From positions 12,462,001-12,526,000 of the forward strand of contig OZ038379.1 in the NCBI GenBank assembly GCA_964036045.1: a DNA stretch of 64,000 nt, written 5' to 3'. Made by a program: the position numbers and the translations under genes. Positions 4,370 through 58,570 of this stretch are shown in pieces. The DNA is from Eutreptiella sp. 'Long Island Sound 2002'. Lineage: Eukaryota; Protista; Euglenida. The notes beneath the pieces are model-generated. The model searched no databases and was not told the origin of the DNA. It saw nothing but the letters and a program-made list of their open reading frames with translations. Position 1 is the stretch's first letter; every line of letters starts with the position of its first letter.

Positions 4370-4770
4370 GGTAGCGGTTATGTGGCCACTTATGATTCTA
4401 TCCCCCTAATTGGGAGATCCTGAGAAGGCAGGGGTTCTGTAACCTTTTTTGACTTCATCCCCTTATTGGGGACCCCTGAGAAGGCAGGGTTCATGTAGCA
4501 GGGGTCATGTAGCCACTTCTGATTTCATCTCCTTGTTGGGGACCCCTAAGAAGGCATGGGTTTTGTAGCCACTTCTGATTCATCCCCTTATTGGGGACCC
4601 CCGAGAAGGCAGGGGTCATGTAGTAGGGGTCATGTAGCGACTTTTGATTCCATCTCCTTGTTGGGAACCCCCGAGAAGGTAGGGTTATGTAGCCACTTCT
4701 GATACATCCCCTTATTGGGGACCCCCGAGAAGGCGGGGTTATGTAGCCACTTCTGATTTCGTCCCCTTAT
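4370..4770 (+). repeat. ~55-bp tandem satellite (~7 degenerate units)
   Basis: Unit ttcatccccttattggggacccccgagaaggcaggggtcatgtagccacttctgat; single units also at ~23160-23220, 28368-28418 and 33751-33803. Confidence 0.9.
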
Positions 4771-7091
4771 TGAGGCTTCCTCCTCTGCGGTGCATGCAGC
4801 GCGCGTTGGGAATAATTTCGACTGCAAACAAGACAAACAAATCATTGTCACTGTATTCGGTGTTTTTTGCACACTCCACCCCTCTACACCGTGCAATAGG
4901 TCCCAAGCATTTTTTCCCCCCAAGGACCCACCCCTTTCACCCGTGTCCGGGGGGGCTCCCTAAACAATATGGATAGGCCCCCGTTCTAGTTGGGGATATG
5001 TCTCGGTCCCGAGTCTTTGGTGCGGGCCGTGCCAAAAGAGGTCTCTTTATTGTCAACCCCCCCCCCAAAAAAAATACATACAAAATACATGATTACATGC
5101 CAGACAAACCTATTCAACACATTGACACTGTGGGGGTTTGATTTTGCCGGATCTCAGAGGCACTTGAACCAGGGTCTTCCGTGTAAGCCTCAGATTTTCA
5201 AAAACTATGCCAACGAGATCTGTGACATCCCACACAGTGGTGTGATAATGACTGTTGCCTTTATTGAGTAGCACTATATATTACAGGCAGAGCAGGCTTT
5301 TTGTTTTAGACCGGACTACTGCTTGGGACGGTCGTTCACACTGGGGCGAGGCCTGTAGCTGTGGCCTCTCCCCATTATTCAGGTTGTCACCGGCTGAGGT
5401 CATTGAGGACCCGTCCTGCGTTTTGTTTGGTTACAGGCAACCGAACATAGTTCTTCAGGGCCCCTCCGGCCCTAACCCCACTACCTGCGGTTTCTCTAAG
5501 TGTTGGCAACGACCAGTCAGCCCTCACTAGTTCCGGGTGACGCTGACGTATGGGCACATCTGGTTTCCTATGACCTGTTGTTGAATTCCCCAAGACCGAA
5601 TGAGTGTCGGGGAGCACTGTAGAGCCTCTGCACCGCTTTTAAGCATCATTGGTGGGTCTCCAGCCAGGGTGACTCGGAATGCATGATTTTCTTTATATAA
5701 TGGCGTTATATAGTGGTGTTTTGTAAGCTGAGCTGACCTGTGCACAGTGAATCCGAGACACCAATTGAACCTGAGTACTGCTGGACTAATGGCTGGAATT
5801 GTCTATGGCGGGGACATTCAGTCTATCGGAACCGACCATTGATCCCCCAATCGAACCTGATATGGATGTGCTGCAGTGCAGCAGAACAATGCACTGATTG
5901 TGGTAATGACCATGCGCCTCTGACACGGGGGCGTATGCGAGCCCAGTATCCGTTGCATCATGGCCCAAAGCAGGGGGTGTGGGCGGCTACGACCACGTGA
6001 CACTGCTGAGGAGGGAGAGTGGAGACCTCCGTTGTTGTATGCTAACCCCATATGCCACCTCGTCCTTGCCACTTTCTTCATAGCAAGATTTATGAGAGAC
6101 AACATGAGTGGAGATCATTTTGAGATGACCAGCAAGTCGCTTTTGGCGTAAGTAGACCGGGAGGTGGCTGCGCGGGGTGCATGGGTGTGAATATTGCTTG
6201 GACACCATGGTAGTTCAAAGAAAGGGGTGATTTTGGTCCTAGCCCCTCACCCCACCCGCCACCCACCAAGGCGCCAAAACGTGTAAGGGGTGCTGGGGTC
6301 AAGGACGCGCTTGGGCACAGCCCAAATAGCCCACCGTGGTGGCAAATGTGAACCAGAAGCACCGCTTGCCGCCCACATGCAAACTGAACATGTGCAACAA
6401 GGGAAGCACTTGACGTGGCGTGCGCACGGCATAGATATTTGGCCACCTATCCCGACCACGCAACCGTGCTTGCCATCAAGGTGTTTTCTCTCCGTAGGGG
6501 CCGTTTTAGGAGAGGGTAAAGCCTAGGCTTTTTCGGGAAAACACACCGTAGAAGTAGCGTATGATGTGCGCGCGGCGTAGATACTCGCCCACACTTCAAA
6601 GTGTGGTATTCTCGTACCTAGAATTTCTTTGCTGTTCCTTCGGATCCCCAAAAATATTCCCGTTGCACCCTGAATCACATTGGCAAAGCATCAATGCAAA
6701 AGTCGCTCCGCCCGTGTTCTGTTTGTGGAGGGTACCATATTTTCCCTTGAAATACCGTTGCACCCCCCCCCCCCTCGGAGACCATCACTTGGTGAGCCCC
6801 CCCCCCCCCCACCCCATGGGAGACTGTCGCAGGTTGGAGATTTCAAAGGGGGGGTAGGGTAGTTGCGCCATGGGGACTGGCTCCACCTACTTAATAGCGC
6901 CTTACCGCATGGGGCAAAGAGGGTGCACAATGATGCGTCACAGGAGTCATTGGCAATGTCAGACAGAAAATGACGACTCACCAGGTCCCGAGGGAGGGGG
7001 ATGAGCTAGATGGTGTTTGCACATGAACCACATTTTTGCTACAGTTGAAAAGAGAAGAGAGAAGTGAACTTGGTTGAGCGATGACCGAATG

Positions 7092-10312: not shown

Positions 10313-10697
10313 GTCTAGGAGCCTTCAACAACAAATGAGGTACACAGTGGAAAGTGGATGAGAGCGGCTGAAAAGGGGTTCAAAATGAGCTGTATTCATC
10401 CGTTTGTGCAACACAACTAGACTAGGATCATTTTTCCAAAACCATGGTTTTGACCTGTTTTTGAGCCATTTGTCATCCCAAGTTGGCCGAATTTTCAAGG
10501 CCCTTTCGGCCTTGAGAGGGGCCAAAATTGCTCAACATGGGCTCAAAATGGGCTCATTCCACTTGTTTGTGCACCCCAAATAATCCAAAAGTATCTTTGG
10601 AAAAACACATTTTTGATCCACTAGTTGTGCCTCGTCTCAACTTTTGTTTGTGTCTCCAATGTTTAGGCAGTTTTTCTGTCTTTGTTTTTGTTAACCC

Positions 10698-11553
10698 ATG
10701 GACGGGGTTGAGCACCCCGATCAAGCCCAGCAGATGTCAGCAGAGGAGCGACTGGCTGCCCAGGCCAAGGAGATTCAAGACCTCAGAGAGCAACTCGCCC
10801 GAGTGGCAGTGAAGGAGGGACCACGCTTGCCCCCGCTGAGCGTGCCGGAGATCAACCGAGCCCTCGAGACGCCCCAATTGGCAATGGATGCGGCTGATGC
10901 TCTCGAACATCAAGGCGTACGTACGGCTTAGGGCTGGTGAGGTAGGGGAGATCCCCCGCCCCAGCGAGTTCGGCGGCCAGTCAACGGAGGCCGCGGTCGA
11001 TCCGGGGGAGCAGCTGGCGTGGCGGGTCTGGGACTGTGTCTCTCAGTCCCAAGCGGCTTATGCCCGCCGATATGCCGGCTCCCTGGGGAAGTCCAACTCC
11101 GAGTCCAACCAGTACGCTACGTTGGAAGAGGCATGGAGGGCGCTGGGGTTGGCATTCACATGGCGGAGTGTGAAGTTCAGGGAAGTGGGCGGAGTGCTGC
11201 AGTGGCAATCACGGCAAGGGGAATGGATCCCCGTAGAGTCACCACCGAGCGGAGGGTGCCAGAGGTGTGCGCAGCGGGGTTCCCCCGACGAGCGGCACTG
11301 GCACTTTAGGTGCCCGCACTGGTCCTCACAGGATCAGCTGGAGCCCGGACGAGCCGCCCCGGGCTCTGGCATCACAGGCACCGCGGCAGAGCTGCGGGCA
11401 ATCGCCCGCAGGTGGGAGACGGCAGCGCCTGGCAGACGGCCCCTGTTCCCCAGAAGAAAGCGCAATGCAATCGTGGAGACCGAGGACCCGGTCGCAGTAT
11501 GCGTCGCGGCTTCAAGCATTGGCCGCTTACGCGGAGCGCACAGGCCCGCCTGA
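10698..11553 (+). pseudogene. Gag-like protein of element 1, frameshifted
   Basis: N-terminal coiled-coil-like segment; GTAC duplication at 10917-10924 links ORF 10698-10931 to ORF 10888-11553; C-x2-C..HW..C motif (CQRCAQRGSPDERHWHFRC) aligns with gag of element 2. Confidence 0.75.
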
Positions 11554-22962: not shown

Positions 22963-24102
22963 GGGGGAACGTTAGCGCGCCGGGCGCGCGCCGGGCGCGC
23001 GCCGGGCATCTTTTTGGACCCGTGCCCCTCTAGTGGCCTTTTAGGGGGTGCACTAAGGGGGCGCACTTAGCACAGTGCAGCTATTTGGGCGCCTAGCTGT
23101 ACTAGAGACCCACACTTTGAGATACTAGGAGCATCATGGTGACCCCCGGCTTAGGTTTTGACTTCTGATTTTGTCTCTTTTGTTGGGGACCCCCGAGAAT
23201 GCAGGGGTGACGTAGCATTTCCGCCCTCTTTTGGGCCCCAACCTTCCGGTGCTATTGAGGAAACCGGGACAATCTTTGAATCCTAAGTATGCGTCGCATG
23301 TTTACAAGGTGACTGTTGCCGTTGATATGTTGGGCAACATTATATGGATTTGCCCCTTGGCCCCCGGGACATCAGCAGATGTTTTGATTTGGGATGGGTA
23401 CCCGAGGTGATTTCTTTGATTTTGAAGTTGGGGCCCATGATGGTGCTTATAAAGGCCGGATTCATGTCATTGTGCCATTCATTGGAAGAAAGAATGGCAC
23501 TTTGACAACCTGCCAACAATGTTACAATGATGTGCATGGGTGGTACAGGGCACGCATTGAGCAGCTGTTTGCTCGGTTGTGGCATTGGGGTTTGGTTAGG
23601 AACATTTGGCGTGGCGGCCCCAATGAGTTGCAGCAGTCAGTCCGCATTTTGTTGCATTTCACACAGTTTTGCATCCAGAGGCAAGTCCGTCACCCCCCCT
23701 ACGGACCATGGGAGCATGTCCCGCCTCAGATTTGGACTGACCAAAGCAACTCGGCCGCCACGCAAGATGAGGCAGAGGATGAGGCGGAAGTGTGTGTGTT
23801 GTGTTGCCAAAGGCGCTCCCCCGTCGCAGTTTGTGATGAGTGTAAGGAGCATTATTGTACTGAATGTATTGACACCCACACTTGTGGGACCAATGTTGTT
23901 TGTTTTTTACACTACAAATGACAGTTAGAGTGGTTGAATTCACAGATTCTGCTTTATTTTGCAACGTGCTTTGTAGGGAAGGTGTGCAGTGCAATGTGGT
24001 CTACTTGGGGGGCTTCTCCATGGGAGGGTAAATCTGGGGCTGAAGTCGGGATAGTTAATAGAAAAGTAGTGCTCCGGGTGCGCGCCGGGCAAACATTCCC
24101 CC
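22963..24102 (+). mobile_element. PIF/Harbinger-like (IS5/DDE_Tnp_4) DNA transposon, internally deleted, copy 1
   Basis: TIRs GGGGGAACGTTAGC / reverse complement GGGGGAATGTTTGC; 3-bp TSD AAG (22960-62, 24103-05); transposase remnant inside. Confidence 0.85.
23266..23921 (+). pseudogene. DDE_Tnp_4-type transposase C-terminal half with terminal Cys/His zinc finger
   Basis: NPKYASHVYKVTVAVDMLGNIIWICPLAPGTSADVLIW, HDGAY, PFIG, YNDVHGWYRARIEQLFARL; ends CVLC..CDEC..YCTEC..HTC. Confidence 0.85.
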
Positions 24103-26407: not shown

Positions 26408-27216
26408 CAAGCATGTGCAGCCGCAGCATGCCGCAGCACCCGTTTTTTGGAGCTGCACATAGGTGTTTGGAAGCATGCCGCAGCATGCCGCGGCATCCAA
26501 AATTGCTCAGTGCATGTCCAAAATTGCTCAGTGCATGTCCAAAATTGCTCAGTGCATGTCCAGCTCCACAGGCTGGCTGCTGCTCAGATCAAGGTTTTGC
26601 AACAGGCAGCCACAGTGATGTCTGGCAAGGTGGATAATCTGCATGCAAAGACTATCAAAGGGCGAGGCAAGGCTCAAGCAGCAAGTAATTGTTTCAACCC
26701 AGAAGTACTGCAGACCAAAGAAATGATGTCTTATTCTGAGTTGTGTAAATACATACCCAATGTGCCACAATCTGAGTGGGTGCGGTATATTGCTCTGCCA
26801 CCCCGAGCCCTCTGCTGGATTCTACTGTAGCCAGAGTGGCATGGTGGGATGCCAAAAAAGATGATTTTCCGACTTTGAGTAGCATTGCTGTTTTCCTTGT
26901 CCGACGACCACGCTCTGCTTGCCATGTTGAGCGAACGTTCAGTTTGATGGGCCACATCCAGACAAAGGACCGTTTGCATATGGGCAACAACACTTTGCAC
27001 CGTTTGGCTATGATGTATGTCAACAAACCCACTACCGACGATCCGGATGGTGAAAGTGATTAATTCGGCCCAACAGTGTTATGCATGTTGTCTCTTGTTT
27101 GTGAGTTCACTTTCCAACAGATGCGTAGGTACCCACATGTGCAGGTAGAAGCATGCCGCGGCATGCCACAGCATGCCGCAGCACAAGAAAATTTTCCAAG
27201 GGACCGCACATGCTTG
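26408..27216 (+). mobile_element. Internally deleted hAT DNA transposon
   Basis: 11-bp TIR CAAGCATGTGC; perfect 8-bp TSD GTAAAGAC (26400-07, 27217-24); subterminal gcatgccgc repeats; 21-bp x3 tandem at ~26498-26561. Confidence 0.92.
26600..27063 (+). pseudogene. hAT transposase C-terminal dimerisation domain fragment
   Basis: WWDAKKDDFPTLSSIAVFLVRRPRSACHVERTFSLMGHIQTKDRLHMGNNTLHRLAMMYVN; frameshift upstream. Confidence 0.9.
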
Positions 27217-28547
27217 GTAAAGACCGTGAAATTGATTGCCAAACACATGCATTCTCAAGCCTCAAGAACAGTTACAAGAGAAGCAGCCATATGAAGCTAC
27301 AGATCGGAGCCAAAGCATGGACCGTAGGATAAAAGCCAGCAAAGAGTAAAAGCATGCAACAAAATAAAAGCAGTGCCGGCTTTTCAAAGGGGGGAGGTCT
27401 AGTCCATTTTGTAAAATAAACCCTAAGAGACAAAAAGGAACACCCTTCCAAACTCTTGGGTGCACATCATTATGACACAAGGTATGTATGGGGATGACAA
27501 GACAGGGACTTCCAACCATGGAGGCACTGTGTTGGAACAATGGGGGACAACCAGAAATTTTTTTTTAGAAAACAGGGCATTCTAGTAGTGATATAATATC
27601 ATTGTAGGCTAGAATTTTTGACCTAAAATATTCTAGTTTCAAAATCCTTGAACGTTCTAGGTTCGAGGTAAGGAGATTCGTCTCTGTGCTCTTCTGGCCA
27701 CTTTTTGTTGTCGCATATGAGAGATTCCCCGTAATCTATAAAAGGACACCACCATGTTGGCTGTGTCTTTGCATGTGCCTGGCGTCCATCACATGAAGAT
27801 GAAGGTGTTGCTAGTCCTCAACGGTCTTGGCAGTTGTTTTGTGTCTCTTGAACACATGATAGTGTGTGTCCCGTTGCTTTTGTTCAGTATGGTGTTCGTC
27901 GTCACGTGTAATAGTTTGCATAATTTCGTGCCCCTCGGGAGTTGGGCTATTAGTCTCCGGTCCAGTTCATAGGTGAATTGCACTATAAAATGATGGTTGC
28001 CAAATGGGTTGCTAGCCTCGGAGATAGGTGGCTCTTGGTTTTCTCAAGTATAGGTATATTGTTCATGGTCGTAATCTAGTATTTCTTGCACATATTATGC
28101 TATGTTTTCCTTGTGTTCCAGTGAATGTTGGTAAGGCATGTACAAGCTTTCATACTCATTCTCCATTATCTAGTATGGGCCCAGCGCTGGGGTGTTCTGT
28201 TCCTCTTGTTGTATTGTTTGTAATGAGGGAGCGTTAGTGCGTTGGGCGCGCGCAGGGCAACTTTTTGGGCTATTTTTGATTCCTACCCTTGTTTTTGGGT
28301 TGGATTCTACCCGCCGGATGGGTGAGTGGGTGGGCTTTTTGCCTGGGCTATGTAGACATATTAATTTGTCTCCACCATAGGGACCCCGAGAAGGTAGGGC
28401 TGATGGAGTCATATTGATCTGTAGTTCCGTAGGAATGGAAGTTCCGCCCGGAGTGCGTGTGTGTGTGCCCGATTGACTCCACTGGGGGCGTCTCCCTCCC
28501 TGTTGCAGATAAGTTTTTCTGTGACTGAGGTGCACTGCTCTAGTGCC

Positions 28548-29852
28548 ATGTCTGATCTGCAAAACGCTTCTGGTAGATCATCGTCTGCAACAGCGCGGGT
28601 GGGGCGCGGGGGCCGCCGGTCGAAAGGCCCAAAGCGCCCGGCTGCTCCACAGGAGTGGGAGTGGGAAAAGCTGGTTGCGGACGACAAGCAGACCCTAGAT
28701 ACCGCTTGGTGCATGCTCCTGGACATGCCAGGCCTGGCTGAGGACGTACCAGTAGAAAGCCGCACGCCTGTCCTGGACTGCGGCTTCACTTGCTGGAACT
28801 CTTCGTTGACGCTGACGACTACACACTGCGCGGTGTTGTTTCGGCGCCTGCTGGGCGTGCCCATGGTCAGCTCGGAGTTCGTGACGTACAGGGACGCGTT
28901 TCTGTTCGCCCTCTCGGTGCACTGGGACGTCGACGTCGCCAAATACGACCTGACCCCCGAGCAGTCCCAGGCAGCTTTCGCTTTCGTGGACCTGCTGGCG
29001 GCAGATCTCACATACGGGCGTGCTGGGCTCACCTCTGGGGAGGAGGCCACGGCGGGGCGGGCGTCAGCTCCAGCGCCGGGGAATCCTGCGGACGCCGACG
29101 ACCCCTCTGAAGGAGAACGTCCCGGCCACGCGGATGGCGAGCTTGAGGAGCCCGACAAGTATGCGATGACCAAGCAAAATATCCGGGCTGTACGGAAACA
29201 AGCTGGGGCGTCGCGCTGGGCAATCAGACTGGGGCGACTGCTTGAGAACATCATCATGGACACTGACGACCGCGAAAGTAACGGCGCTGGCATGGACGTC
29301 GACGGCTGGCGGAGCCAAGCAGCCACGGAGCCAGCGAACGGAGGAGGCAAGCTCGAAGTCGCGATGGAGGTGTGGTCTGTGCTGCTCCGCACGGAGGAAT
29401 GGGCACAAAAGCTTCTCAAGGACAAGCACCGCGAGGCAAAAGCCCGCCGCAAGCGCAAGGCCAAGCGGGCGGAAAAGCGCGAGCGCAAGGCCAAAGACAA
29501 AGGGCGTGGGGGCGCGAAAGGCAAAAGGTCGTATTCTTCCTCGGAGTCCTCGTCGGCATCCTCGGACTTCTCCGATAGCTCCTCCGACGACGGTGGGCGC
29601 GCGGCGCGCAAGTCATCCAGCTCATCGACGTCACCGGACTACCAGAAGGTGTTTGAAAGCACACAGCACGCCCCTGGGGCGCCGGCTTTCGTGTGGATCA
29701 AAGGGGAGCCACACTTCAGGAGTCGAAACTCAGGGGACCTGGTGAACTGCGCGCGACAGCCAAAAACCCCCTGCCGAATCTGCGGCCACTGCCACTGGTA
29801 CTGGCAGGGGGGGGCATACAGCTGCCGCGGGCAGTACGCGAAAAAGCACTGA
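28548..29852 (+). CDS. Gag-like protein of element 2
   Basis: ATG immediately follows repeat A; Lys/Arg-rich and Ser-rich tracts; C-terminal CARQPKTPCRICGHCHWYWQGGAYSC. Confidence 0.8.
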   Translation: MSDLQNASGRSSSATARVGRGGRRSKGPKRPAAPQEWEWEKLVADDKQTLDTAWCMLLDMPGLAEDVPVESRTPVLDCGFTCWNSSLTLTTTHCAVLFRRLLGVPMVSSEFVTYRDAFLFALSVHWDVDVAKYDLTPEQSQAAFAFVDLLAADLTYGRAGLTSGEEATAGRASAPAPGNPADADDPSEGERPGHADGELEEPDKYAMTKQNIRAVRKQAGASRWAIRLGRLLENIIMDTDDRESNGAGMDVDGWRSQAATEPANGGGKLEVAMEVWSVLLRTEEWAQKLLKDKHREAKARRKRKAKRAEKRERKAKDKGRGGAKGKRSYSSSESSSASSDFSDSSSDDGGRAARKSSSSSTSPDYQKVFESTQHAPGAPAFVWIKGEPHFRSRNSGDLVNCARQPKTPCRICGHCHWYWQGGAYSCRGQYAKKH

Positions 29853-31160
29853 CTCGGCGATGGGCGGAGGGGCTCTGACTCGGACTCCCCGATCCGCCCC
29901 CGCTGCCCTCGTCCAGAGGGCCCTGCCGCGCATCCGACCGACGGACAGTCAACGCCCTGCGGGTGTGGGGTTGGCGGCGCTGCCGGGGCAGTTGTTGCAA
30001 GTGATCGAGGAATCGGCGTACGGACTGCAGATGCCATCGCCCTCTCGGAGGCCATCACACGGTACCGGGGGGCGGCCGCTGCCGACTTCGCCACCACCTA
30101 CGACAGCACAGCTCTCTACGGATTCGCGAAAGACACAAGAGACAGCTATGGAGATGCGCTGCGACGCCTCGCCGTCACCGTCAGGCGACAGCCGGGTGCC
30201 AGCGCCCGGGAATGCCTGCAAGACCACATGCTTGGCCTCATCCGCACCACGGAATCGGACAGTGGCCCCCGAAAACTTCTCGCAGCGGTCAGGGTACTGG
30301 AGAAGTTCAAGTGGATCCAGCCCATCGTCTGCCCAATGGACTGGAAACTGGTCGAAGCCGTCGCCTCTTTCCATGAAAAGCGCCGGGGAGCCTCGTACAA
30401 ATTCTGGGCGTCCATGCGAGCGTTCCGCAGCCTCTGCGAGCTCGCCTCCGCACCACACGAATGGGAAGTGGTGGCGCTGGCGGCGCTCAGCATCGCATTT
30501 GGCCTCCGGGCAAAGGAAGCCGTCACCGCTTACTATGATGGATCCACCGTCCGCTGGCAAGGGGCAAAGGGGCGCAGTGGACCCTGCGAAGAGGTGCCAG
30601 GCCCCTGGACAGCCTTGTGGGCGCAGCGCCTCTGGGACCTCCGTGCGCGCCACGGTTACCACCCAGAGCGCCCGGCATGGCACAGTACTCGGCAGAGCCT
30701 GCACAAAGCTCTCAAAGACCTCGTCAATCGCCCGAACTCGGGCTGCTCGCTACTCCGCTGGCATGGCTGGCGGCGCTTCGGGAGCGCGCAGCTCCGCTGC
30801 TTGGGCGCCCCCACGGACACGCAATTGCGCTGGGGGGGCTGGGCGACGCCGGCAATGCTCCGCATTTACGCGTACCCCACGCACACGTGGGAGTTCGTTC
30901 GTGGGGGGCCGCTCATCATCCCCTCACAACAGGCGGAGACACTTGGTTGGCAGGAGCAGACGGGAACCACGTATCAGATCTGGTCACCATGGGTCCGGGC
31001 CGACCTCACCCGGGCGCAATCGGCCCCACCCCGCCCAACGCTACAGGGTCCTCCACGACCCGACGGGGAGGTTACGAGCACACCACCGATGCGGAAAAAG
31101 CGAGTTCGTACAACATCGAGCGGCACAGCAGGAGCACACGGAGCTGCGACCGCAAATTGA
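29853..31160 (+). CDS. Tyrosine recombinase of element 2 (frame open from the gag stop; first ATG at 30228)
   Basis: FGLRAKE, GAKG, RWHGWRRFG, RWGGW, LRIY; upstream YGFAKDTRDSYGDALRRL aligns with element 1 MQSWRPRTRSQYASRL. Confidence 0.9.
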   Translation, partial: LGDGRRGSDSDSPIRPRCPRPEGPAAHPTDGQSTPCGCGVGGAAGAVVASDRGIGVRTADAIALSEAITRYRGAAAADFATTYDSTALYGFAKDTRDSYGDALRRLAVTVRRQPGASARECLQDHMLGLIRTTESDSGPRKLLAAVRVLEKFKWIQPIVCPMDWKLVEAVASFHEKRRGASYKFWASMRAFRSLCELASAPHEWEVVALAALSIAFGLRAKEAVTAYYDGSTVRWQGAKGRSGPCEEVPGPWTALWAQRLWDLRARHGYHPERPAWHSTRQSLHKALKDLVNRPNSGCSLLRWHGWRRFGSAQLRCLGAPTDTQLRWGGWATPAMLRIYAYPTHTWEFVRGGPLIIPSQQAETLGWQEQTGTTYQIWSPWVRADLTRAQSAPPRPTLQGPPRPDGEVTSTPPMRKKRVRTTSSGTAGAHGAATAN

Positions 31161-32946
31161 GTTGCTGGCGCGCAAAGTGTCGAGCCTGGACGGTATACGT
31201 TGGGGGCGCCGGGAGATGGTCCGCACGGCGCTCGTTGACATGTACTTGGCGCTGCTAAACATCGATGGAGGTGCGGCGGCAGCTCCTCTTTTCCGAGATG
31301 TTCTAGAAGGCATAGCGGAAAGTGGCCTGTGCCGTCCAGACGACATGCTTTACGACGACAGTACTCCGCTGCCACCAAAGAACCAGTCCCAGAAGGTGCC
31401 CGAGCAGGTGGCAGCCAAGGGCTTGGGCCCAGCAGGACGCGTCAGCCTCGCGCGCAGCCTCTGGCGGAAATGTGTCCCGCGGGGGCTTCGGGCGATCTAC
31501 CGTCGGTGTACCAAATCCTTCTCCTGCCGGGGGGCGGCACGCCACTCCAGCGCGACAGCCCCCCTTTCTCACATGTTTGAATCGGTTCACGCTGTCACGT
31601 GTGGCGCTAAGCCCACGTCGGCCCCTGTTTCTGCCAGCGCCTTTCTTAGACCTAAGTCTTCCGACAAGTGCAGGCTGCTCCTCAATGCCACTGCCATAAA
31701 CGCTTATGATGAGCGTCCTCCTCCCAGGGTCAAGCTCCCTGCCCTCTCTGCTATCATGTCTCGCTTCCAGCACAGGCCCCTTGGGCCACTGTACATGTGT
31801 AAATTGGACTTGACCAATGCCTATTGGAGTATCATACTCCCAAGACGGTGGCGCCGCACATTTGTAGTTCAGGCAGGCCAGCGTCGGTGGCGCTTTACGC
31901 GCCTGCCATTTGGCTGGAAGTATTCTCCAGCAATCTTCTCCAGCAGCCTCGTTTCTGGGATTGTGGCGCGTGCACTGCGCGGCACAAATGTTGACTGGGA
32001 TGTCTACCTTGACGACATCCTCATCACCGCCACTAGTCCGGCGGCAGCCCGGGCAGGGGTGCAGCGTGTGGCTGCGGCTCTCCGTGATGCGGGGTTTATA
32101 ATTAGCCCCAAAAGCGAGCTGGAGCCTTCAACCTGCATCACCTTCCTCGGCAAGCGGCTGGACTCTGTTAGGCGCTCTGTTTCCAACAGCATGGACATGC
32201 TCAAGGCCACGCTGCGTTTGTGGCTGCAAGGGGTCGGCACGGGGCGCATGCCAGCGAGAGAGATGGCCCGCTTCCTGGGGCGATTACAGTGGGTCTTCAG
32301 ACCAATGGGGGGGGCATCTGTTTTCCTGGCGGGGGCCTATAATGCCATGCACCACCGCTCCCCATTTTTCAGCCGCACGCTGATCCGTGCCACTGGTACG
32401 GCTCTGCTCCTCTCCTTCCCGTCTCACGGTCTCAGTGACCCATCACATGTGCGTGTACATACTTTCTTCTCAGACGCAGCGCCCTGCGGACGGCGTTTCA
32501 GAATCGGGGTCGTTGGTTCCCCAGGTTTTTACAGATCCTACGTCTGTCCCCGCTGGGTCCGCAGCCTGCAGCAGGCAGAGCTATATGGCGTATATGGAGC
32601 TCTAAAAGCTGCAGTAGGCTGCCGGTTGCGTTCTGTGGCTGTGGGTATCGACAATGAGGCGGTCCGAGTCCAGTCCGCCTCCCTACGGGCGTCCACTGAC
32701 TGCCCTGTACAGCTGCGTCTGTTGCGACGCATCTTCTGGCTGCGGGCGTGGAGTGGCCTGCAACTGTCTGTTTTTCGAGTGCCTTCAGCGGTGAACCCCG
32801 CTGACCCTCTGAGCCGGAAGCATGAAATGCTTTCCCGGGCCTCCATGCTGAGCCTCTGCGAGCAGCGTCGGGTGGCCTGGGGGGAGTCAGACCTGCCGTT
32901 TGACCGCCTACGACAGTCCGTCCCCACTCCCAGGGTGGCTCCATGA
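29860..32946 (+). CDS. RT/RNase H polyprotein of element 2 (N-terminal ~430 codons overlap the YR gene)
   Basis: 1028-aa ORF; KLDLTNAYW, RLPFGWKYSP, YLDDIL; RNase H FFSDAA, QQAELYG, GIDNEA, NPADPLSR. Confidence 0.95.
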   Translation: MGGGALTRTPRSAPAALVQRALPRIRPTDSQRPAGVGLAALPGQLLQVIEESAYGLQMPSPSRRPSHGTGGRPLPTSPPPTTAQLSTDSRKTQETAMEMRCDASPSPSGDSRVPAPGNACKTTCLASSAPRNRTVAPENFSQRSGYWRSSSGSSPSSAQWTGNWSKPSPLSMKSAGEPRTNSGRPCERSAASASSPPHHTNGKWWRWRRSASHLASGQRKPSPLTMMDPPSAGKGQRGAVDPAKRCQAPGQPCGRSASGTSVRATVTTQSARHGTVLGRACTKLSKTSSIARTRAARYSAGMAGGASGARSSAAWAPPRTRNCAGGAGRRRQCSAFTRTPRTRGSSFVGGRSSSPHNRRRHLVGRSRREPRIRSGHHGSGPTSPGRNRPHPAQRYRVLHDPTGRLRAHHRCGKSEFVQHRAAQQEHTELRPQIELLARKVSSLDGIRWGRREMVRTALVDMYLALLNIDGGAAAAPLFRDVLEGIAESGLCRPDDMLYDDSTPLPPKNQSQKVPEQVAAKGLGPAGRVSLARSLWRKCVPRGLRAIYRRCTKSFSCRGAARHSSATAPLSHMFESVHAVTCGAKPTSAPVSASAFLRPKSSDKCRLLLNATAINAYDERPPPRVKLPALSAIMSRFQHRPLGPLYMCKLDLTNAYWSIILPRRWRRTFVVQAGQRRWRFTRLPFGWKYSPAIFSSSLVSGIVARALRGTNVDWDVYLDDILITATSPAAARAGVQRVAAALRDAGFIISPKSELEPSTCITFLGKRLDSVRRSVSNSMDMLKATLRLWLQGVGTGRMPAREMARFLGRLQWVFRPMGGASVFLAGAYNAMHHRSPFFSRTLIRATGTALLLSFPSHGLSDPSHVRVHTFFSDAAPCGRRFRIGVVGSPGFYRSYVCPRWVRSLQQAELYGVYGALKAAVGCRLRSVAVGIDNEAVRVQSASLRASTDCPVQLRLLRRIFWLRAWSGLQLSVFRVPSAVNPADPLSRKHEMLSRASMLSLCEQRRVAWGESDLPFDRLRQSVPTPRVAP

Positions 32947-32981
32947 GAGCAGGTGCAAGGCTCGCATTCGCTCGCGGGCCT

Positions 32982-33750
32982 CTGTGAGTAGCACCGAAGA
33001 AGCAATGTGTTTTGGATGGAGAGTGTCTTACAGTGGAGGGTGCACATGCTTGTCTCCTGCTTTGATGCGCGGCGCACACACACGCACGGGGGAACTGTAG
33101 TTCCGTAGGAATGGAAGTTCCGCCCGGAGTGCGTGTGTGTGCCCGATTGACTCCACCGGGGGCGTCTCCCTCCCTGTTGTAGATAAGTTTTTCTGTGACT
33201 GAGGTGCACTGCTCTAGTGCCACCCGCCCAACCCGCCCTCTATTACCGTGACCTTCTCACGGGTATGCGTTCCAGTCGAACTGTCCTCTGGAGCCTGTGC
33301 TCCAGTGACTGTGAGTAGCACCGAAGAAGCAATGTGTTTTGGATGGAGAGTGTCTTACAGTGGAGGGTGCACATGCTTGTCTCCTGCTTTGATGCGCGGC
33401 GCACACACACGCACGGGGGAACTGTAGTTCCGTAGGAATGGAAGTTCCGCCCGGAGTGCGTGTGTGTGCCCGATTGACTCCACCGGGGGCGTCTCCCTCC
33501 CTGTTGTAGATAAGTTTTTCTGTGACTGAGGTGCACTGCTCTAGTGCCACCCGCCCAACCCGCCCTCTATTACCGTGACCTTCTCACGGGTATGCGTTCC
33601 AGTCGAACTGTCCTCTGGAGCCTGTGCTCCAGTGACTGTGAGTAGCACCGAAGAAGCAATGTGTTTTGGATGGAGAGTGTCTTACAGTGGAGGGTGCACA
33701 TGCTTGTCTCCTGCTTTGATGCGCGGCGCACACACACGCACGGGGGAACT
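32982..33750 (+). repeat. 327-bp tandem array of terminal repeats B(115)-A(127)-C(87), 2.35 units
   Basis: B at 32982-33096, 33309-33423, 33636-33750; A at 33095-33221, 33422-33548; copies appear identical. Confidence 0.97.
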
Positions 33751-35204
33751 CTCCCCACCATGGGGACCCCGAGAAGGCAGCGGTGATGTAGCCATATTGA
33801 TCTGAGGGAATTGAGCAGCTGTTTGCTCAGTTGTGGCATTCGGGCTTAATTCGGAACATTTGGTGTGGTGGTCCCAACGAGGTGCATCAATCAGTGCACA
33901 TTTTGTTACTTTACCCAATTTTGCATCCGGGAGCAGGTCCTTTTCCCTCCGTATGGACCGTGGGAACTTGTTCCCCCTCATGTTTGGAAGAGCACCAAAG
34001 CAACCGTTGAGGATGCCACGCAAGATGATGTTGGAGATGAGGTTGATATATGTGCATTGTGCAGTCAAAAGCACACTACAACAAAATGTGGTGAATGTAA
34101 TTTGAATTATTGTGTGGAATGTATTGACCCGCACACCTGTGGGGCCAAGACTGTTTATTGAACAGTCTTGCTTGTCCAATTTGAGTGAACAAATTTGGCG
34201 GAACAAAGTTGTGAAGGTGATCCAGATATGCTTTTCCTGATCGATGTTGTGCAGGGATGGTTTGTTGCTTCATTTGGTTGGCAAGAGGCATCTGTTGGTC
34301 TACTCGGGGGCTTCATAGGGTAATGGTGAACTTGGGGACTCAATCTGGGAAAGTCATCATAAAAAGAGCACGCAGGGTGCGTGCGGGGCAAACACTCCCC
34401 CAATGTGTCATATACTCCTGGGAGTAGTTGCATAGAGTTGCATAGTTTCCAAGTGTAGCAGCCACTCTATCCTGCCAGGTTCTGCTATGTTGTCCTCCTG
34501 GCCAGCTTTGTACCCAACTACGAGTTCCATGGCCCTTGAGGCTCTTGCAACACCATTTGGATTTGTTGTGTGTTCGTCTTCGCTACTATCCCATGAGGTC
34601 ACCACCGCTGCTTGCTGCATTTTTTGTTCAGCATTGTGTACCCTGCAACTCAGTACCTGAAGGTGTACACAAATTGACAAGTTCTAGGTCCTCAAGTGGT
34701 CCCCAGACGACAGACAGAAAACAGAACATCTGCCATCCAGACCCTTTGGGGGCGCCTTAAGCGCAGTGCGCGCGCAGTGCGCGCGCAATGCAACTATTTG
34801 GGCGTCTAGCCGTACTGGAGACCCATACTTTGTGATACTAGGGGGCATCATTGTTGCCCCTAACGTAGGTTTTGATGCTTCTTCCACATTGGGGATATGT
34901 CATTTTTGGATTTTCACCCACTTTCACCCATTTCCGCCCCGTTTCACACTTTTTTGCTCATCCCCACCATGGACTCCCACACTTTGGTGTGGGCCCTTGA
35001 GTTGGGGTGACAGACTCCCCGGTTTTTGCTTGACCACGGTCGAATGCCCTATGCGAGGCCGCATCACTGCTGATAAGGATGCGTGGTTGTACCACAACTA
35101 GAAACTGGAGTTTGACGTGGATTCCCTCCTACAAGCCACTGTGCCCCACGGTCAGTTACAGTCCTGGTGGAGTGCCTACTAGAAATGAACAGATGGATAT
35201 GCGA

Positions 35205-38200
35205 CACCTTCCGAAAACAAATAAATGAACACACCACAATAGCTGCTGAAGACCCGAATAATACCTTTAAGTGGAAGTGTGCTTCAGAGCCATTTGCTAT
35301 TGTTCTCGCAAGCGCGGGGGGTTGGCACACAATCTGGGGTTTTCAAGACAGACTGGGCCAAGGGGTATGCGCCATGCATATGTGGTTTTGCACGGCCAAA
35401 GCAAAGGAAGTCTCCTGAAGAGCATGTGACACCCTTCACAAAAGAGTGTAATCCCTGGTGTTCGCCCTTGCCTCTGAGTTCACCTGCTTTTTCAGGCCTA
35501 CTGCTTTCACAAGATATGTCTTTCAACGAGTTTCCCTCCGTCAGTCTGTTCCTTAAGGTGCCTGGACTCTCTGAGGAGGCCCAAAAGCTGAATCAACAGG
35601 CGTGCCATGTGGCCTACGGGGGTGATACTGAGGCTGCTCTCCAGTATGTAGAGATGGCCATCAGAACCACCAACAGTTCCCTGCCCAGAGAATTGTTGTA
35701 CAACAAAGCTTTGTTGCTGCTGCGCCAACATGATCATAAGTTGTGCCTCGAGGTGGTCAGTCAGATTTTGGTGCGATTCCCTCAGGTTTTCCCCCTTGCC
35801 GCGATGTGGGTGTGATGGGAATTGATGGGAGTTCCCGCCAGCACTGCCCGAAAGCTTTCTATTCTGTTTCCAGGACTGACCAAGGCTGACGTCAGCTGGA
35901 AGGGAACAGGCAACTGATGATGGAAGGTCAACCGGCGGTCCTTGGGGTTAACTTGGAGGTGGATGGCCAACCAAGGGCAGTTCTGTTGCAGACAGAAGGC
36001 CCCCGGCTGTTTTTTCTGTGCCTTGTTCAGGGCCCTCCTGACTGTAGCCCCACCATCCACCCTTTGCACATTAGTCGTCTTTCAGGATGTGCATTACCAG
36101 GTTCAGAACAAGCCCCAGAGCTGTCATTATCATTGTCTAGCACTTGTAGGGCCACTTGCTGAAATGTTTCTGTGTCGTGCTGCGGCTGCTTCATTTCTGT
36201 TCTGCAGTCCTGCTCGATATGCAATGCTACACCTGTGCTGCATGTCCAGAAAACCCCTGCACATCTGAGATCAAGGCCCATCAAGGCCCATCAAATTGAT
36301 CAGCGGAATGTGCTGAACATGAAGATGTATGTGGTGGGGGCCAACGATCACTTTTTTTTTTTGAAGGGTGTAAAGTGGTGATAATTGGCCAAAATTGGCC
36401 TTCCAAACTTCGTAATCGTTGTTTCGTCATCGGGGGGGCACCCCCTTACCTCCACTACATTCATCCCTGTTCTATATTCACCATATCCAACCCTGTGCTG
36501 CCGCATAAATTGAGCCGTTTCGGACCCCCAAACCAGAACCTCCCCTCGCTGACCAATCCTCCATTGATGCTTGGCGAACGGTGGTGGATTTCCGAAATAC
36601 GAATGCGGCGACCAAGCAGGACACACATACACACTCCCAAAGGTTGAGACGGTGTCAGCTTTTGGCCCTTGCATGCGGCGTTTTGAGTGGTTGGTGGTTT
36701 TGGGGTTGGCGTTTTGAGTGGTTGGTGGTTTTGGGGTTCGTACTGGCGCAGTCACCCCGAAAATGAGCGCTGTGCCTATGCTGTGCCCAGGCTGTACGGA
36801 ACCGCAACATAGGACTGGCATTTAGGCTGGCATTGCGTAGTGCCTGGCTGCGTGTGTTTTTGTTCGACTGTTGCCATGGCAGTTCCTGGTTGTTCTTGCC
36901 TTTGTAGGCGTGGGACCAGGTGCTGTGCCTAGCCTCCAAGGCCTGGCTGAGCGAGGGGAAGTTTGACGATGCGCTGGCCTGCTTGTGGCAGATCCATGGT
37001 GTTTACTTACAGGAATACGTCTCCTCACAGCTGATGATCGCCGAAAGCACGGGTCAGTGCCCCTTTGCCCCCAAAACAGATATGTGAGAAATGTTGTTGC
37101 CCTTTTGGATTCGGAGCATTGGCTAATGGGCCGGCGACAACATACTATGATTGCTGTGCTCCGTGACAGTACAGACAAAGAGAGGGTGGAGATTTGCACA
37201 GCGACTCATTTGGCGTTGGGACTTTGCTACCAGTTTGTTGACTTCACTTACACCGACAGATTGGGAAATCCAACATGTATCTCCAATCAGTGTCACCTTC
37301 CGAAAACAAATAAATGAACACACCACAATAGCTGCTGAAGACCCGAATAATACCTTTAAGTGGAAGTGTGCTTCAGAGCCATTTGCTATTGTTCTCGCAA
37401 GCGCGGGGGGTTGGCACACAATCTGGGGTTTTCAAGACAGACTGGGCCAAGGGGTATGCGCCATGCATATGTGGTTTTGCACGGCCAAAGCAAAGGAAGT
37501 CTCCTGAAGAGCATGTGACACCCTTCACAAAAGAGTGTAATCCCTGGTGTTCGCCCTTGCCTCTGAGTTCACCTGCTTTTTCAGGCCTACTGCTTTCACA
37601 AGATATGTCTTTCAACGAGTTTCCCTCCGTCAGTCTGTTCCTTAAGGTGCCTGGACTCTCTGAGGAGGCCCAAAAGCTGAATCAACAGGCGTGCCATGTG
37701 GCCTACGGGGGTGATACTGAGGCTGCTCTCCAGTATGTAGAGATGGCCATCAGAACCACCAACAGTTCCCTGCCCAGAGAATTGTTGTACAACAAAGCTT
37801 TGTTGCTGCTGCGCCAACATGATCATAAGTTGTGCCTCGAGGTGGTCAGTCAGATTTTGGTGCGATTCCCTCAGGTTTTCCCCCTTGCCGCGATGTGGGT
37901 GTGATGGGAATTGATGGGAGTTCCCGCCAGCACTGCCCGAAAGCTTTCTATTCTGTTTCCAGGACTGACCAAGGCTGACGTCAGCTGGAAGGGAACAGGC
38001 AACTGATGATGGAAGGTCAACCGGCGGTCCTTGGGGTTAACTTGGAGGTGGATGGCCAACCAAGGGCAGTTCTGTTGCAGACAGAAGGCCCCCGGCTGTT
38101 TTTTCTGTGCCTTGTTCAGGGCCCTCCTGACTGTAGCCCCACCATCCACCCTTTGCACATTAGTCGTCTTTCAGGATGTGCATTACCAGGTTCAGAACAA

Positions 38201-39389
38201 GCCCCAGAGCTGTCATTATCATTGTCTAGCACTTGTAGGGCCACTTGCTGAAATGTTTCTGTGTCGTGCTGCGGCTGCTTCATTTCTGTTCTGCAGTCCT
38301 GCTCGATATGCAATGCTACACCTGTGCTGCATGTCCAGAAAACCCCTGCACATCTGAGATCAAGGCCCATCAAGGCCCATCAAATTGATCAGCGGAATGT
38401 GCTGAACATGAAGATGTATGTGGTGGGGGCCAACGATCACTTTTTTTTTTTGAAGGGTGTAAAGTGGTGATAATTGGCCAAAATTGGCCTTCCAAACTTC
38501 GTAATCGTTGTTTCGTCATCGGGGGGGCACCCCCTTACCTCCACTACATTCATCCCTGTTCTATATTCACCATATCCAACCCTGTGCTGCCGCATAAATT
38601 GAGCCGTTTCGGACCCCCAAACCAGAACCTCCCCTCGCTGACCAATCCTCCATTGATGCTTGGCGAACGGTGGTGGATTTCCGAAATACGAATGCGGCGA
38701 CCAAGCAGGACACACATACACACTCCCAAAGGTTGAGACGGTGTCAGCTTTTGGCCCTTGCATGCGGCGTTTTGAGTGGTTGGTGGTTTTGGGGTTGGCG
38801 TTTTGAGTGGTTGGTGGTTTTGGGGTTCGTACTGGCGCAGTCACCCCGAAAATGAGCGCTGTGCCTATGCTGTGCCCAGGCTGTACGGAACCGCAACATA
38901 GGACTGGCATTTAGGCTGGCATTGCGTAGTGCCTGGCTGCGTGTGTTTTTGTTCGACTGTTGCCATGGCAGTTCCTGGTTGTTCTTGCCTTTGTAGGCGT
39001 GGGACCAGGTGCTGTGCCTAGCCTCCAAGGCCTGGCTGAGCGAGGGGAAGTTTGACGATGCGCTGGCCTGCTTGTGGCAGATCCATGGTGTTTACTTACA
39101 GGAATACGTCTCCTCACAGCTGATGATCGCCGAAAGCACGGGTCAGTGCCCCTTTGCCCCCAAAACAGATATGTGAGAAATGTTGTTGCCCTTTTGGATT
39201 CGGAGCATTGGCTAATGGGCCGGCGACAACATACTATGATTGCTGTGCTCCGTGACAGTACAGACAAAGAGAGGGTGGAGATTTGCACAGCGACTCATTT
39301 GGCGTTGGGACTTTGCTACCAGTTTGTTGACTTCACTTACACCGACAGATTGGGAAATCCAACATGTATCTCCAATCAGTGTCACCTTC
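35205..39389 (+). repeat. 2089-bp direct tandem duplication
   Basis: All ORFs repeat with offset 2089; CACCTTC microhomology at 35205, 37294 and 39383. Confidence 0.97.
35540..35760 (+). CDS. TPR-like helical exon of a host gene (duplicated at +2089)
   Basis: LSEEAQKLNQQACHVAYGGDTEAALQYVEMAI..LLYNKALLLL; a second TPR-like exon from 36908 (AWDQVLCLASKAWLSEGKFDDALACLWQ); boundaries approximate. Confidence 0.45.
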
Positions 39390-40051: not shown

Positions 40052-40338
40052 GGCCCCTTTCCGGTTGGGGATATGGACCGGCCCCTTTCCGGTTGAGGAT
40101 GTGGACCAGCCCCTTTCTAGTTGGGGATATGGACTACCCCTTTTCCACTTGGGGATGTGCACCGGCCCTTTTTCACTTGGGGATATGGATTGGCCCCTTT
40201 CCATTTGGGAATATGGACCAGCCCCTTTCCACCTGGGGATATGGAGTGGCCCCTTTCCAGTTGGGGATATGGAGTGGCCCTTTTCCGGTTGGGGATATGG
40301 AGTGGCCCCTTCCCGGTTGGGGATATGGACCGGCCCTT
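40052..40338 (+). repeat. 28-bp tandem satellite (~10 units)
   Basis: Unit gcccctttccggttggggatatggaccg; an isolated unit at ~4970-5000. Confidence 0.92.
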
Positions 40339-40743
40339 TAGAAAGCATGTTCCACACTTTTTTTGATCACTCCAAGGGCAACTTTGTGCGAGTTTATAAG
40401 AGAAGCAGCCATAATGGCACGACAAGACTGCAGTTCAGAAGAGGATGAAATTGGTGAGTCCAAGTCGAACTCTGATTGATCTTCGGCAAACAATTTGATA
40501 ACAATGAGCATTCCTCCGTGTTTCCTGTTTGTGTTGCCTGGTGGTGTTTAGGTGAGGCACAATGTATGGACCCAAAAAGATGAGTTGATTACCTGTTTTC
40601 AGACATTATGACAAATGTATATGCTGAATGGGTCAGTGTGGTGCATTTTTGCAATTCCAGGTGGATATGGTTCAGTTCGGCGCGGGGGGGGGGGGGGGGG
40701 GGCTCCCCCCTGGACCCCCTCCCCCCCTCCCCTGGGCCCCCTG

Positions 40744-41110
40744 GGGTATATTTCGGGGATCACCGGGACACGGCACAGTGCATCCCCATCACTCAGAAAC
40801 AAACAAATAACAGGGGAGAGCTCCTCGCGGCTATACATGCCATTCACCATAGGACACAGCACAAGCGCACACTGATCTGCTCTGATTCAAAACTAGTGGT
40901 CATGGGGGCCACAGGCAAAGCCAGCAAATGGCGGCGCCATGACTGGCAAGGTTCGCGGGGGCCGGTGGGCCACGTGGACCTGTGGGAGCAACTCCTTGGG
41001 GAAATTGAGCAGGCAGGGGCAGCGGTACGCTGGCTGCATGTCCCCTCACACGTTGGCATTGTAGGGAACACACACGCGGACACACTGGCTGACATGGGCC
41101 GCCGCAAATC
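40744..41110 (+). pseudogene. RNase HI-like domain (retroelement-type), N-terminus disrupted by a G-run/C-run insert
   Basis: GVYFG, QTNNRGELLA, ICSDSKLV, WRRHDW, HVDLWEQL, HVPSHVGIVGNTHADTLADMG. Confidence 0.9.
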
Positions 41111-41660
41111 CCCCCTCCTCCGAGGGTATGTCACCTCAGCCCGGCGCCCACAGCAGGAAGGGCAGGCACAAGAACAGGAAGACGAGTCCGACCTGGATGA
41201 GCCACCCATGTTTTCTCCGGAGGAGCGGGCGGCCAGCCCGCCTCCTCGTGGCACCCCCCCCCCCCCCGACCCCCCGCAGACAGGGAGTTACTGCACTGCT
41301 GGAAGTCGAAGACTGCACCCCAGCCTCCAAGAGACCACGCCACTCACCAGGCTGTACTGACCCGGCCTCTGGGTGGAGGTCGCGGGCGGTCTCCCGCTCA
41401 CCACGGCAAACACCAATGCGTGACGTCAGGCAGGAACTCTTCCCCTCGTCAGCCCCCCCCTCCTCCCCAGGCAGCTGTGATGAGGCCTGGCTGGCACCCA
41501 GATCGCCAGCAACGGCCTCCACGATCACGTGCAGCACGGAGGGCTCACGGTGTGGAACACCGGACCCCAGCCGCCCTTTGTTTGGCACGCCATAATGCAC
41601 GCGAGCCCACACCCCCATAGGATCAGACTCCATGAGCGTCAGACACCCCAAACAGGGCAA

Positions 41661-57198: not shown

Positions 57199-58204
57199 TG
57201 CGCCGGCCACGTCGTGATGTCCCGTGCCCTCAATCCGAATGGAGCCTGTGGGCGCTCCCCAAAAGGGGGCGATGCCAGATGCCTGTCCACCGTGCCCCTG
57301 CGCTTCCAGTGCGCACGCTTGTCCCATGCCTTTCCGTCCTCAGTCTACCTCCGCGAGGGTCTCCATCATTGCACCATCGGCTCTATCCCCTGTGCTTGCG
57401 CCCCAAGGACGACTCCTGCGGGGCCATTCAGTATCGCCCTCGCCCCTACCCTTTTCGTGGGTGTAGGTCTATTCTGCATTTTCCCCTGTGCGTGACGTCA
57501 GATGTACCCCGTTGACCAACGTGTTGGCAGCACTCATACCATGGCAACAGCCGTTGCGCACTTGTGTCTGCGTCTATCGGAGAAGTGCTGCTGCCCGTGC
57601 TGCGCAAAGTTGATTCTGGTACTTTCCTGAAAGGAATATTGAGGGGTCCGTGAAAAAAGAGTGGTGGTTTGCATTGTGTGGTTTTCCTGTTTGCGTCCGT
57701 GTCGTCCTGCATTTTTGCATCTCTCTGCAGATGCACGTACTTGTGGAACAACACGAGTCATGCATCAAGCAAGGCAAATGAATGCGGTAATTCATCGGGA
57801 ATTTGGACGCTACAGCATCAGGGCTCCTGACAACAGCTCAGCACCACTGGGGGATGGGGGGGGCGCACCACCCACCCACACCCCCTCGATGCCCAGCCCC
57901 ATTGTGTTCGGCGTAAGTCACTTATTTTTTTTTTTGGTGTAGGTTGTATGTGGAGGAAAAACCTGAAAATGCTATGGCATGCGACCTACATCAAAAAAAA
58001 TGTGTCTTCCGTTTTTTTTTTGTGATGTGACCTACATCCGAAGAAAAAAAAATTGCATGCGACCAACAGCAAAAAAAACAAAACAACGCCATATACACTT
58101 TTTTTGTGACGCGACCTACACCCACAAAGAAAACCAGTACACGCGTCCTACATCCCAAAAAAAAAAGTGCACACGCATTACTGTGCCAAAAAACAAAAAC
58201 ACTT

Positions 58205-58570
58205 CGGCGTGGCCCCTCGAGTTGGGGTAATGGACTCCCACACTTTGGTGTGCCCCTTGAGTTGTGGTTATGGACTCCCACGCTTCGGTGTCGCCCCTCA
58301 AGTTGGGGTGATGGACTCCCACGCTTCTGGGTGGCCCCTCCGGTTGGGGTGATGGACTCCCAAGCTTCGGCCTAGCCTCTCAAGTTGGGGTGATGGACTC
58401 CCGGGCTTGAGTGTGGCCCCTTGAGTCGGGATGATGGTGTTCCATGCTTGGGTGTGGCCTTTTGAGTTGGGGCGATCGACTCCCATGCTTCGGTATGGCC
58501 CCTTGAGTTGTGGTTATGGATGCCCATGCTTCGCTATGGCCCCTCGAGTTGGGCCGATGGACTTTCACGC
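58205..58570 (+). repeat. ~41-bp tandem satellite (~9 units)
   Basis: Unit gcccct(c/t)gagttggggtgatggactcccacgcttcggtgtg; partial unit at ~34968-35010. Confidence 0.92.

Follow-up and report, generated by a model that had tools for sequence, protein, structure and literature searches.

A probable full-length tyrosine recombinase retrotransposon of VIPER/TATE architecture in an intron-containing, non-kinetoplastid eukaryote

The 64-kb stretch of contig OZ038379.1 analysed here (the window) contains, between positions 28416 and 33750, what is probably a full-length, coding-competent tyrosine recombinase (YR) retrotransposon with the architecture of the VIPER/TATE elements, resident in an intron-bearing, non-kinetoplastid eukaryote. 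Its parts follow one another in the order A1, gag, YR, reverse transcriptase (RT)/RNase H (RH), B1-A2-C-B2-A3-C-B3, where A, B and C are the pieces of a split direct repeat (Table 1). This map, with a doubled 327-bp unit at its right end, had been put forward in the original prediction, and the repeat finder and Tandem Repeats Finder agree on it. The prediction had also called the element potentially active and possibly undescribed: it is indeed full length, with the gag-YR-RT/RH order and open frames, and its lineage and host are undescribed, but its design is that of VIPER/TATE. The novelty is one of lineage and host, not of design.

VIPER/TATE elements encode a gag-like protein and, in two overlapped open reading frames (ORFs), YR and RT/RH; they are bounded by split direct repeats of the form A1...B1-A2-B2 and have no target duplications (PMC12278014). 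The element in the window shares with them the order of the gag-like, YR and RT/RH genes, the overlap of the YR and RT/RH ORFs and the split direct repeats, here with an 86-nt spacer, C, between A2 and B2. Its ORFs of 434/435/1028 amino acids (aa) compare with 492/338/948 aa in VIPER of Trypanosoma cruzi (PMC6681497), its gag has a knuckle-like motif as some VIPER/TATE gag proteins have a zinc-knuckle-like one (PMC6681497, PMC12278014), and no longer target duplication was seen. It is unlike them in its non-kinetoplastid, intron-bearing host and in the greater length of the spacer (84-150 nt), which is kept across subfamilies. Ngaro and PAT also have repeats of the A1...B1A2B2 type, a YR with HxxR...GW...Y and, in Ngaro, an RNase H ending NxADxxSR, but in both RT/RH precedes YR (PMC8547959), whereas YR lies upstream of RT here. 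In contrast to long terminal repeat retrotransposons (Ty3/gypsy etc.), neither long terminal repeats nor a protease or DDE integrase were found: the repeat finder detected no identical terminal repeats flanking the element, and Pfam scans of its ORFs, which pair RT/RNase H with YR as in the DIRS order, gave no PR (aspartic protease) or rve (DDE integrase) domain. DIRS1 carries inverted repeats at its termini and, internally, a complementary region. The element is like DIRS1 in combining RT/RH with YR and in a presumed integration of a circular intermediate without target duplication, but it differs in gene order and has no inverted repeats, the repeat finder returning no inverted-repeat pair of at least 30 nt within 27000-35500.

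The gag-like protein has a basic, serine-rich tail followed by a C-terminal CX2CX3H knuckle-like motif, which is also present in a distant relative, L014; no Pfam family matched it, and an exact look-up of the 434-aa protein gave no record. YR lies in the gag frame, directly behind the single gag TGA, and carries the motifs R (LRAKEA), K (GAKGR), HxxR (HGWR), W (GGW) and Y (RIYAY), which are kept among eight homologues and align with the YRs of RT-first relatives. The catalytic part of three family members matched Pfam Phage_integrase weakly (expect values, E, of 0.29, 6.7e-4 and 0.1), the YRs of the RT-first relatives scoring E=0.004-0.005. An AlphaFold model from 9 sequences was unusable (predicted local distance difference test, pLDDT, 49), and a broader alignment was used instead; this gave a catalytic domain with pLDDT 76-93, for which the top Foldseek matches were all tyrosine recombinases (Cre, XerA, XerH, lambda Int and an integron integrase; E from 2e-4). 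Searching the PDB by sequence, whether with the YR sequence alone or with a YR profile, yielded spurious matches only. In the RNase H-like domain the columns D438, E473, D497 and P546-R552 are invariant or nearly so (alignments A3 and A4); the equivalent part of a second RT ORF in the window and of P0111 is matched by RVT_3, and P0109 and P0146 gave weak matches to DNA_pol_viral_C. Apart from RVT_1 and the weak Phage_integrase matches, Pfam found no further family in the ORFs of the element.

The ATG of the RT/RH ORF lies 8 nt past the gag stop, in a frame that is open from 29746 and so overlaps the end of gag by 107 nt, and the first ~430 codons of this ORF cover the entire YR gene in the +1 frame; the corresponding residues are of low complexity and had no matches. 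The earlier statement that all ORFs are open with all catalytic motifs present needs qualification: three frames are open and the motifs were found, but YR, whose first in-frame ATG is at 30228 (codon 126), is not a separate ATG-initiated ORF and is wholly overlapped by that of RT. When the synonymous codons of the YR frame were resampled with the element's own codon usage, 8.2 stops were expected in the +1 frame and none is present (P about 1.5e-4); for comparison, in gag and in the RT part the +1 frame contains 8 and 13 stops, respectively. The same arrangement is found in L014 (Logan contig SRR31154554), with an RT that shares about 26% identity with the focal one. There a TGA closes gag, the gag frame continues into YR (E=3.5e-25 against the YR profile), and the RT ORF, of 945 aa, starts close to the gag stop and runs through YR in the +1 frame, with no stop against 13.2 expected (0/10,000 resamplings). 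In JGI contigs L017 and L021, YR lies directly upstream of RT and both frames are open together over 0.95 and 1.6 kb, and L022 has the same gene order and frame relation. Each of the five lineages examined has RT in the +1 frame relative to YR, four distant lineages keep the RT frame open over the entire YR gene, and the absence of stops in the +1 frame across YR is non-random. L014 also has, at 3-1991, a gag-like ORF with three 2A-like peptides (DVESNPGP, DVETNPGP and DVEPNPGP).

This organisation suggests that one transcript would give rise to three products. Gag would terminate at the TGA; YR would be made as a Gag-YR readthrough product or by internal initiation; and RT/RH would be produced by initiation, or re-initiation, at the ATG that follows the gag stop, or by a +1 shift inside the overlap with gag, after which the ribosome would traverse the YR region in the +1 frame. 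Translation through YR in this frame would explain why it has stayed free of stops. That the peptide overprinted at the N-terminal end of the RT ORF has a conserved function was considered and rejected, as there is no similarity between lineages; given that this peptide is not conserved, what is preserved would be the translatability of the stretch. Nor was a programmed -1 frameshift near position 30025 retained, as a slippery heptamer is lacking and the shift matches a 2-nt insertion seen against L006 and L007, members of more distant subfamilies.

Evidence on the host comes from L009, a locus with an independent insertion of the element, where positions 13466-17051 hold a host eIF3L gene with two long exons. 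The first part aligns with human residues 87-369 (E=4e-75, compared with 4e-15 for the T. cruzi protein) and the second with human residues 366-549, the identity to the human protein being about 50% as estimated from the printed alignment. Since the two parts are about 1.5 kb apart, they point to a spliceosomal intron, and this intron together with the similarity argues that the host is not a kinetoplastid. The distribution known so far for the VIPER-like subgroup is the Kinetoplastida, and hardly any VIPER/TATE matches outside them have been reported (PMC6681497); TATE-like ORFs have been noted, unexamined, in Diplonema (literature). Scans of the window and nine loci for tRNAs and Rfam families gave no host-informative match, the window itself giving none.

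A profile search of 1.84 billion representatives returned 294 relatives of RT/RH at E<=1e-30. Among 20 clade representatives that were looked up, none has an informative source name; for 28 relatives, cluster look-ups yielded nothing informative beyond a few generic labels such as 'hypothetical protein', and the sequence searches found no named relative of the element and returned no VIPER/TATE protein. Contaminant contigs of VIPER/TATE-like type are mentioned in PMC6681497, and a scan of bacterial and archaeal genomes for these gave no relative. Every clade member with a readable gene order has YR first, and this order is seen in L005, L003, L014, L017, L021 and the window's second element, whereas in L010-L013, the closest relatives found among NCBI assemblies, RT/RH comes before YR; these four fall outside the clade of the focal element. 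In a quick maximum-likelihood tree with a Ty3/gypsy outgroup, from which three Ty3/gypsy sequences were omitted for too short a matched stretch and which held no labelled VIPER, TATE, Ngaro, PAT or DIRS sequence, four RTs from YR-first elements fall in one 44-row group (Shimodaira-Hasegawa-like approximate likelihood ratio test, SH-aLRT, 99) apart from the RT-first group.

Several points weigh against reading the element as a coding-competent relative of VIPER/TATE. Kinship with the kinetoplastid elements is argued from architecture only and not from sequence comparison, and their published RT alignment, read by eye, has [I/L]DN where the element has YLDD, a difference which indicates that its lineage is at least not nested among VIPER/TATE. 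The expression scheme is deduced from the frames alone, and stops are present in the +1 frame of the decayed copies L003 and L005. Furthermore, YR could be defective in the subfamily of the window, in which 2 extra bases near 30030, relative to L006/L007, part the ancestral YR start from the body of the gene, so that this start (ATG 29860) is now in the RT frame. The architectural argument would fail if the YR-first order and the overlap were convergent, the element then being an independent lineage, for example a rearranged Ngaro/PAT-like one, and no relative of VIPER/TATE. The RT-first order of L010-L013, the canonical YLDD and a terminal NxADxxSR that is also found in Ngaro are in keeping with this, and published RT trees of YR elements are poorly resolved (PMC6681497). 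Nevertheless, convergence is rather unlikely, given that order, ORF overlap, ORF sizes, A-spacer-B repeats and the lack of a longer target duplication all coincide with VIPER/TATE and that the RT-first relatives lie outside the 44-row clade, which holds all YR-first rows. It is also quite unlikely that the copy is non-autonomous, unable to make a YR that has no start codon and is cut off from its ancestral start, with frames that are open merely through youth. The 2-nt insertion does put ATG 29860 out of frame with the YR body, the first in-frame ATG lies past the conserved N-terminal region, and the sister copies L001, L002, L008 and L009 are all broken; however, the insertion is common to four independent insertions, the arrangement being shared by window/L008, L001 and L002 while L009 keeps the same frames open, and at least four independent insertions imply that a source element with this arrangement could transpose. 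In L014, too, YR lies in the gag frame directly behind a TGA, an arrangement that fits readthrough as a normal route.

One ENA assembly, ERZ25074135, is the source of every protein relative that was close enough to be located, and clustering at 90% identity groups 29 RT genes together; the family is young, with many copies in the host genome. L001, L002 and L009 are independent insertions, 95-99% identical to the window copy, with the termini A1...B1-A2-C-B2 and a single unit (B2 is shortened in L009); L006 and L007 belong to more distant subfamilies (70-80% nucleotide identity), and L003/L004 to a divergent one with a YR that is 45% identical. Among the five sampled copies of the window's subfamily, only that in the window has all three frames open: L008 has a nonsense change at YR codon 306, which in the overlapping RT frame is a missense change of R to W, L009 has one nonsense codon, in gag, and L001 and L002 have several frame breaks each, those of L002 including gag.

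Within the window the three A copies are 97-98% identical, the three B copies 100% (repeat finder and probe matches) and the two C copies 100%, and A and B overlap by the 5-nt core GAACT. No match of the A and B probes is expected in shuffled sequence, and none occurs elsewhere in the window, where no solo A-C-B unit was seen either. C had been taken to be a unique 87-bp spacer; it measures 86 nt, and is found in three independent copies and in three divergent subfamilies. In L006, L007 and L003/L004 it is 84-150 nt long, starting CACCCGCCCA..CCCGCCCT; all subfamilies keep its position, and L006 and L007 match its sequence at about 80-84% identity. Given its presence in independent copies and divergent subfamilies, the three-part repeat is the normal terminus of the family. 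We know of no report of a C spacer in Ngaro or PAT. Conserved RNA hairpins in C were considered and rejected, the fold z-scores being -2.2, -0.2 and +1.2 in three subfamilies. The A-C-B unit corresponds to the A-spacer-B module of T. cruzi SIRE, which consists of A2, about 30 bp and B2 and is identical to the 3' end of its parent element (PMC6681497); SIRE is dispersed in very many copies, whereas the unit is found here only at element 3' ends and is doubled once.

Tandem Repeats Finder reports the doubled unit as a period of 327 nt in 2.4 copies with 100% matches, the two full units being identical. A 57.6-kb contig, L008, carries the same insertion in the same flanks with only one A-C-B unit. 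The 100 nt of flank on either side match at 100%, and the two contigs are 99.7% identical over 17 kb; 13 substitutions fall within the element, and three aligned blocks spanning the 17 kb hold 30 substitutions and 5 gap openings. The window contig and L008 represent two haplotypes, strains or assemblies. L008 is also without another perfect duplication of the window contig, a 2089-bp tandem one at window positions 35205-39382, 1.5 kb downstream of the element, which has a 7-bp microhomology at its joint. The proposal that the terminal module can expand as a trait of the lineage is not supported by this comparison, as the extra unit is absent both from the allelic L008 and from three independent copies, and the count across the sampled copies is one unit everywhere except in the window contig. 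Given its absence from L008, the extra unit is a private duplication that followed insertion, or an error of assembly, and not a lineage trait.

A real duplication is the likelier of these, though with some reservation, since both window units share a C where A2 of L008 has an A and since L003/L004 show head-to-tail joining at the same junction. It may have arisen once the element was in place, when the identical B repeats recombined unequally or when YR acted at the two B/A sites. There is nevertheless an appreciable, if smaller, chance that the second unit is an artefact and that the true locus has one unit, as L008 has with the same flanks and the same element. Two perfect duplications, of 327 and 2089 bp, that are both absent from L008 would fit such an artefact and count against a real event, the two units are 100% identical, and the names of related contigs (of the form ctgNNNN_41x_l) resemble the output of a long-read metagenome assembler. 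Set against this, the substitutions and gap openings over 17 kb mark the contigs as distinct haplotypes or strains, the shared C implies that two alleles were not simply stitched together, and joining at B/A junctions recurs in L003 and L004. It is very doubtful that units are added as part of the life cycle, either while reverse transcription proceeds or when YR integrates excised A-C-B minicircles at B/A sites. A palindromic site is present at every B/A junction, so that two direct sites flank each 327-bp unit, and whole elements are concatenated at the same junction in L003 and L004; however, exactly one unit is found in the four independent insertions of the subfamily and in L006 and L007, the single unit of the allele indicates a change in place after insertion, and unequal homologous exchange between identical 115-bp B repeats suffices without any function of the element.

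The B/A junctions all read GGAACT-NN-AGTTCC, and the palindrome has two matches in the window, both at these junctions, compared with 0.08 expected. It is also present at the B/A junction of L001, L002, L003, L004, L006, L007 and L009, with conserved arms and a central two bases that change from GT to AG between subfamilies, and GGAA(C/T) and GTTCC half-sites occur additionally within the 30 nt after the junction. The palindromic junction is probably the recombination site. A circular complementary DNA with a B/A junction would recombine, via YR, with a GAACT-like target. The left flanks of four insertions end GATCT, CAACT, GAACT and GAACT, and the right ends read GGGGGAAC followed by T or C, so that the ends share only a GAACT-like core with the junction; with these four insertions, a duplication of 2-5 bp is indistinguishable from a shared crossover core, and no target duplication beyond the core was seen. 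These ends fit strand exchange within a GAACT-like core common to the circular junction and the target. In the window, A1 starts with the core variant GATCT, and its last base is the A of the gag ATG. The target lies in a 53-nt repeat unit, with a partner that is 87% identical directly after the element (33752-33804). A 53-bp target-site duplication was rejected, the flanking units being 87% identical compared with 97-100% for the element's own repeats; the units match the 4376-4772 minisatellite over short stretches of 16-25 nt, which suggests that they are a host repeat.

Two further structures were seen in other loci. Two nearly identical full-length copies and an A-C-B unit are arranged as [A-int-B][A-int-B][A-C-B] in L003 (5553-10919) and L004 (570-10919), with a period of 5003 nt and head-to-tail joints that are GGAACTGTAGTTCC junctions. 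L006 has an 85-nt tandem array of at least 7 copies directly upstream of the element (4500-5309) and a second GGAACTNNAGTTCC motif at 5211-5224.

Table 1. Features of the retrotransposon and its insertion site, in window coordinates
Feature	Position	Strand	Evidence
Host 53-nt repeat unit forming the target	28369..28421	.	Repeat family D5; flanks identical in L008
A1, 5' split direct repeat	28416..28548	+	Direct-repeat families D3 and D4; probes; ends compared among copies
gag-like ORF, 434 aa, ATG 28548, stop TGA 29850-29852	28548..29852	+	Translation
YR frame, 435 codons, no stop	29853..31160	+	Frame translation; Pfam, motifs, fold search
RT/RNase H ORF, 1028 aa, starts ATG 29860	29860..32946	+	ORF list, translation
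RT core, has YLDD	31774..32151	+	Pfam RVT_1, E=4.9e-14, ORF residues 639-764
RNase H-like domain (limits approximate); D, E, D, terminal NPADPLSR	32455..32820	+	Conserved alignment columns
B1, 115 nt, ends GGGGGAACT	32982..33096	+	Repeat family D2, 100%; probe
B/A junction palindrome GGAACTGTAGTTCC, presumed recombination core	33091..33104; second copy 33418-33431	.	Motif search
A2	33092..33222	+	Repeats, probe, comparison with other copies
C spacer, 86 nt	33223..33308	+	Comparison with subfamilies
B2	33309..33423	+	Repeats, probe, Tandem Repeats Finder
A3, within the extra 327-bp unit that L008 is without	33419..33549	+	Repeats, Tandem Repeats Finder, locus comparison
Second C copy, extra unit	33550..33635	+	Repeats, Tandem Repeats Finder
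B3, right end of the element, ends GGGGGAACT	33636..33750	+	Repeats, comparison of ends

The window is rich in transposable elements. At 10376-16187 it contains a second, older YR-first retroelement of a different family, with a YR-like frame at 11453-12226 that has one internal stop, an RT at 13736-15004 that is 32% identical to the focal RT, and flanking direct repeats at 10376-10620 and 15909-16187 of 70-80% identity. Mobile-element remnants or stray domains lie at 21455-21991, 23394-23921 and 40608-41360, where the matches were to Schlafen AlbA_2 (E=5e-6), DDE_Tnp_4 (E=7e-4, below the Pfam cut-off) and RNase H (E=3e-20). Minisatellites are present at 4376-4772 (periods of 54-70 nt), 40052-40336 (28 nt) and 58202-58571 (41 nt).

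VIPER-like elements are treated in the literature as a peculiarity of kinetoplastids. Given a young intact copy in an unrelated eukaryote and hundreds of environmental relatives with the YR-first overlap design, the architecture would instead be a branch of the YR elements that is both old and widespread. It may tentatively be proposed, as a broader view that is open to doubt, that a widespread sister lineage of VIPER/TATE exists in intron-bearing eukaryotes, with an mRNA that would be decoded in three ways (Gag, Gag-YR by readthrough and RT/RH in the +1 frame) and a B/A palindrome that would serve as the recombination site at which units and whole elements are concatenated. The doubled terminal module is of little importance in itself. 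The element would offer a tractable case for the expression of three proteins from overlapping frames, and GGAACT-NN-AGTTCC is a directly testable candidate for its recombination site.

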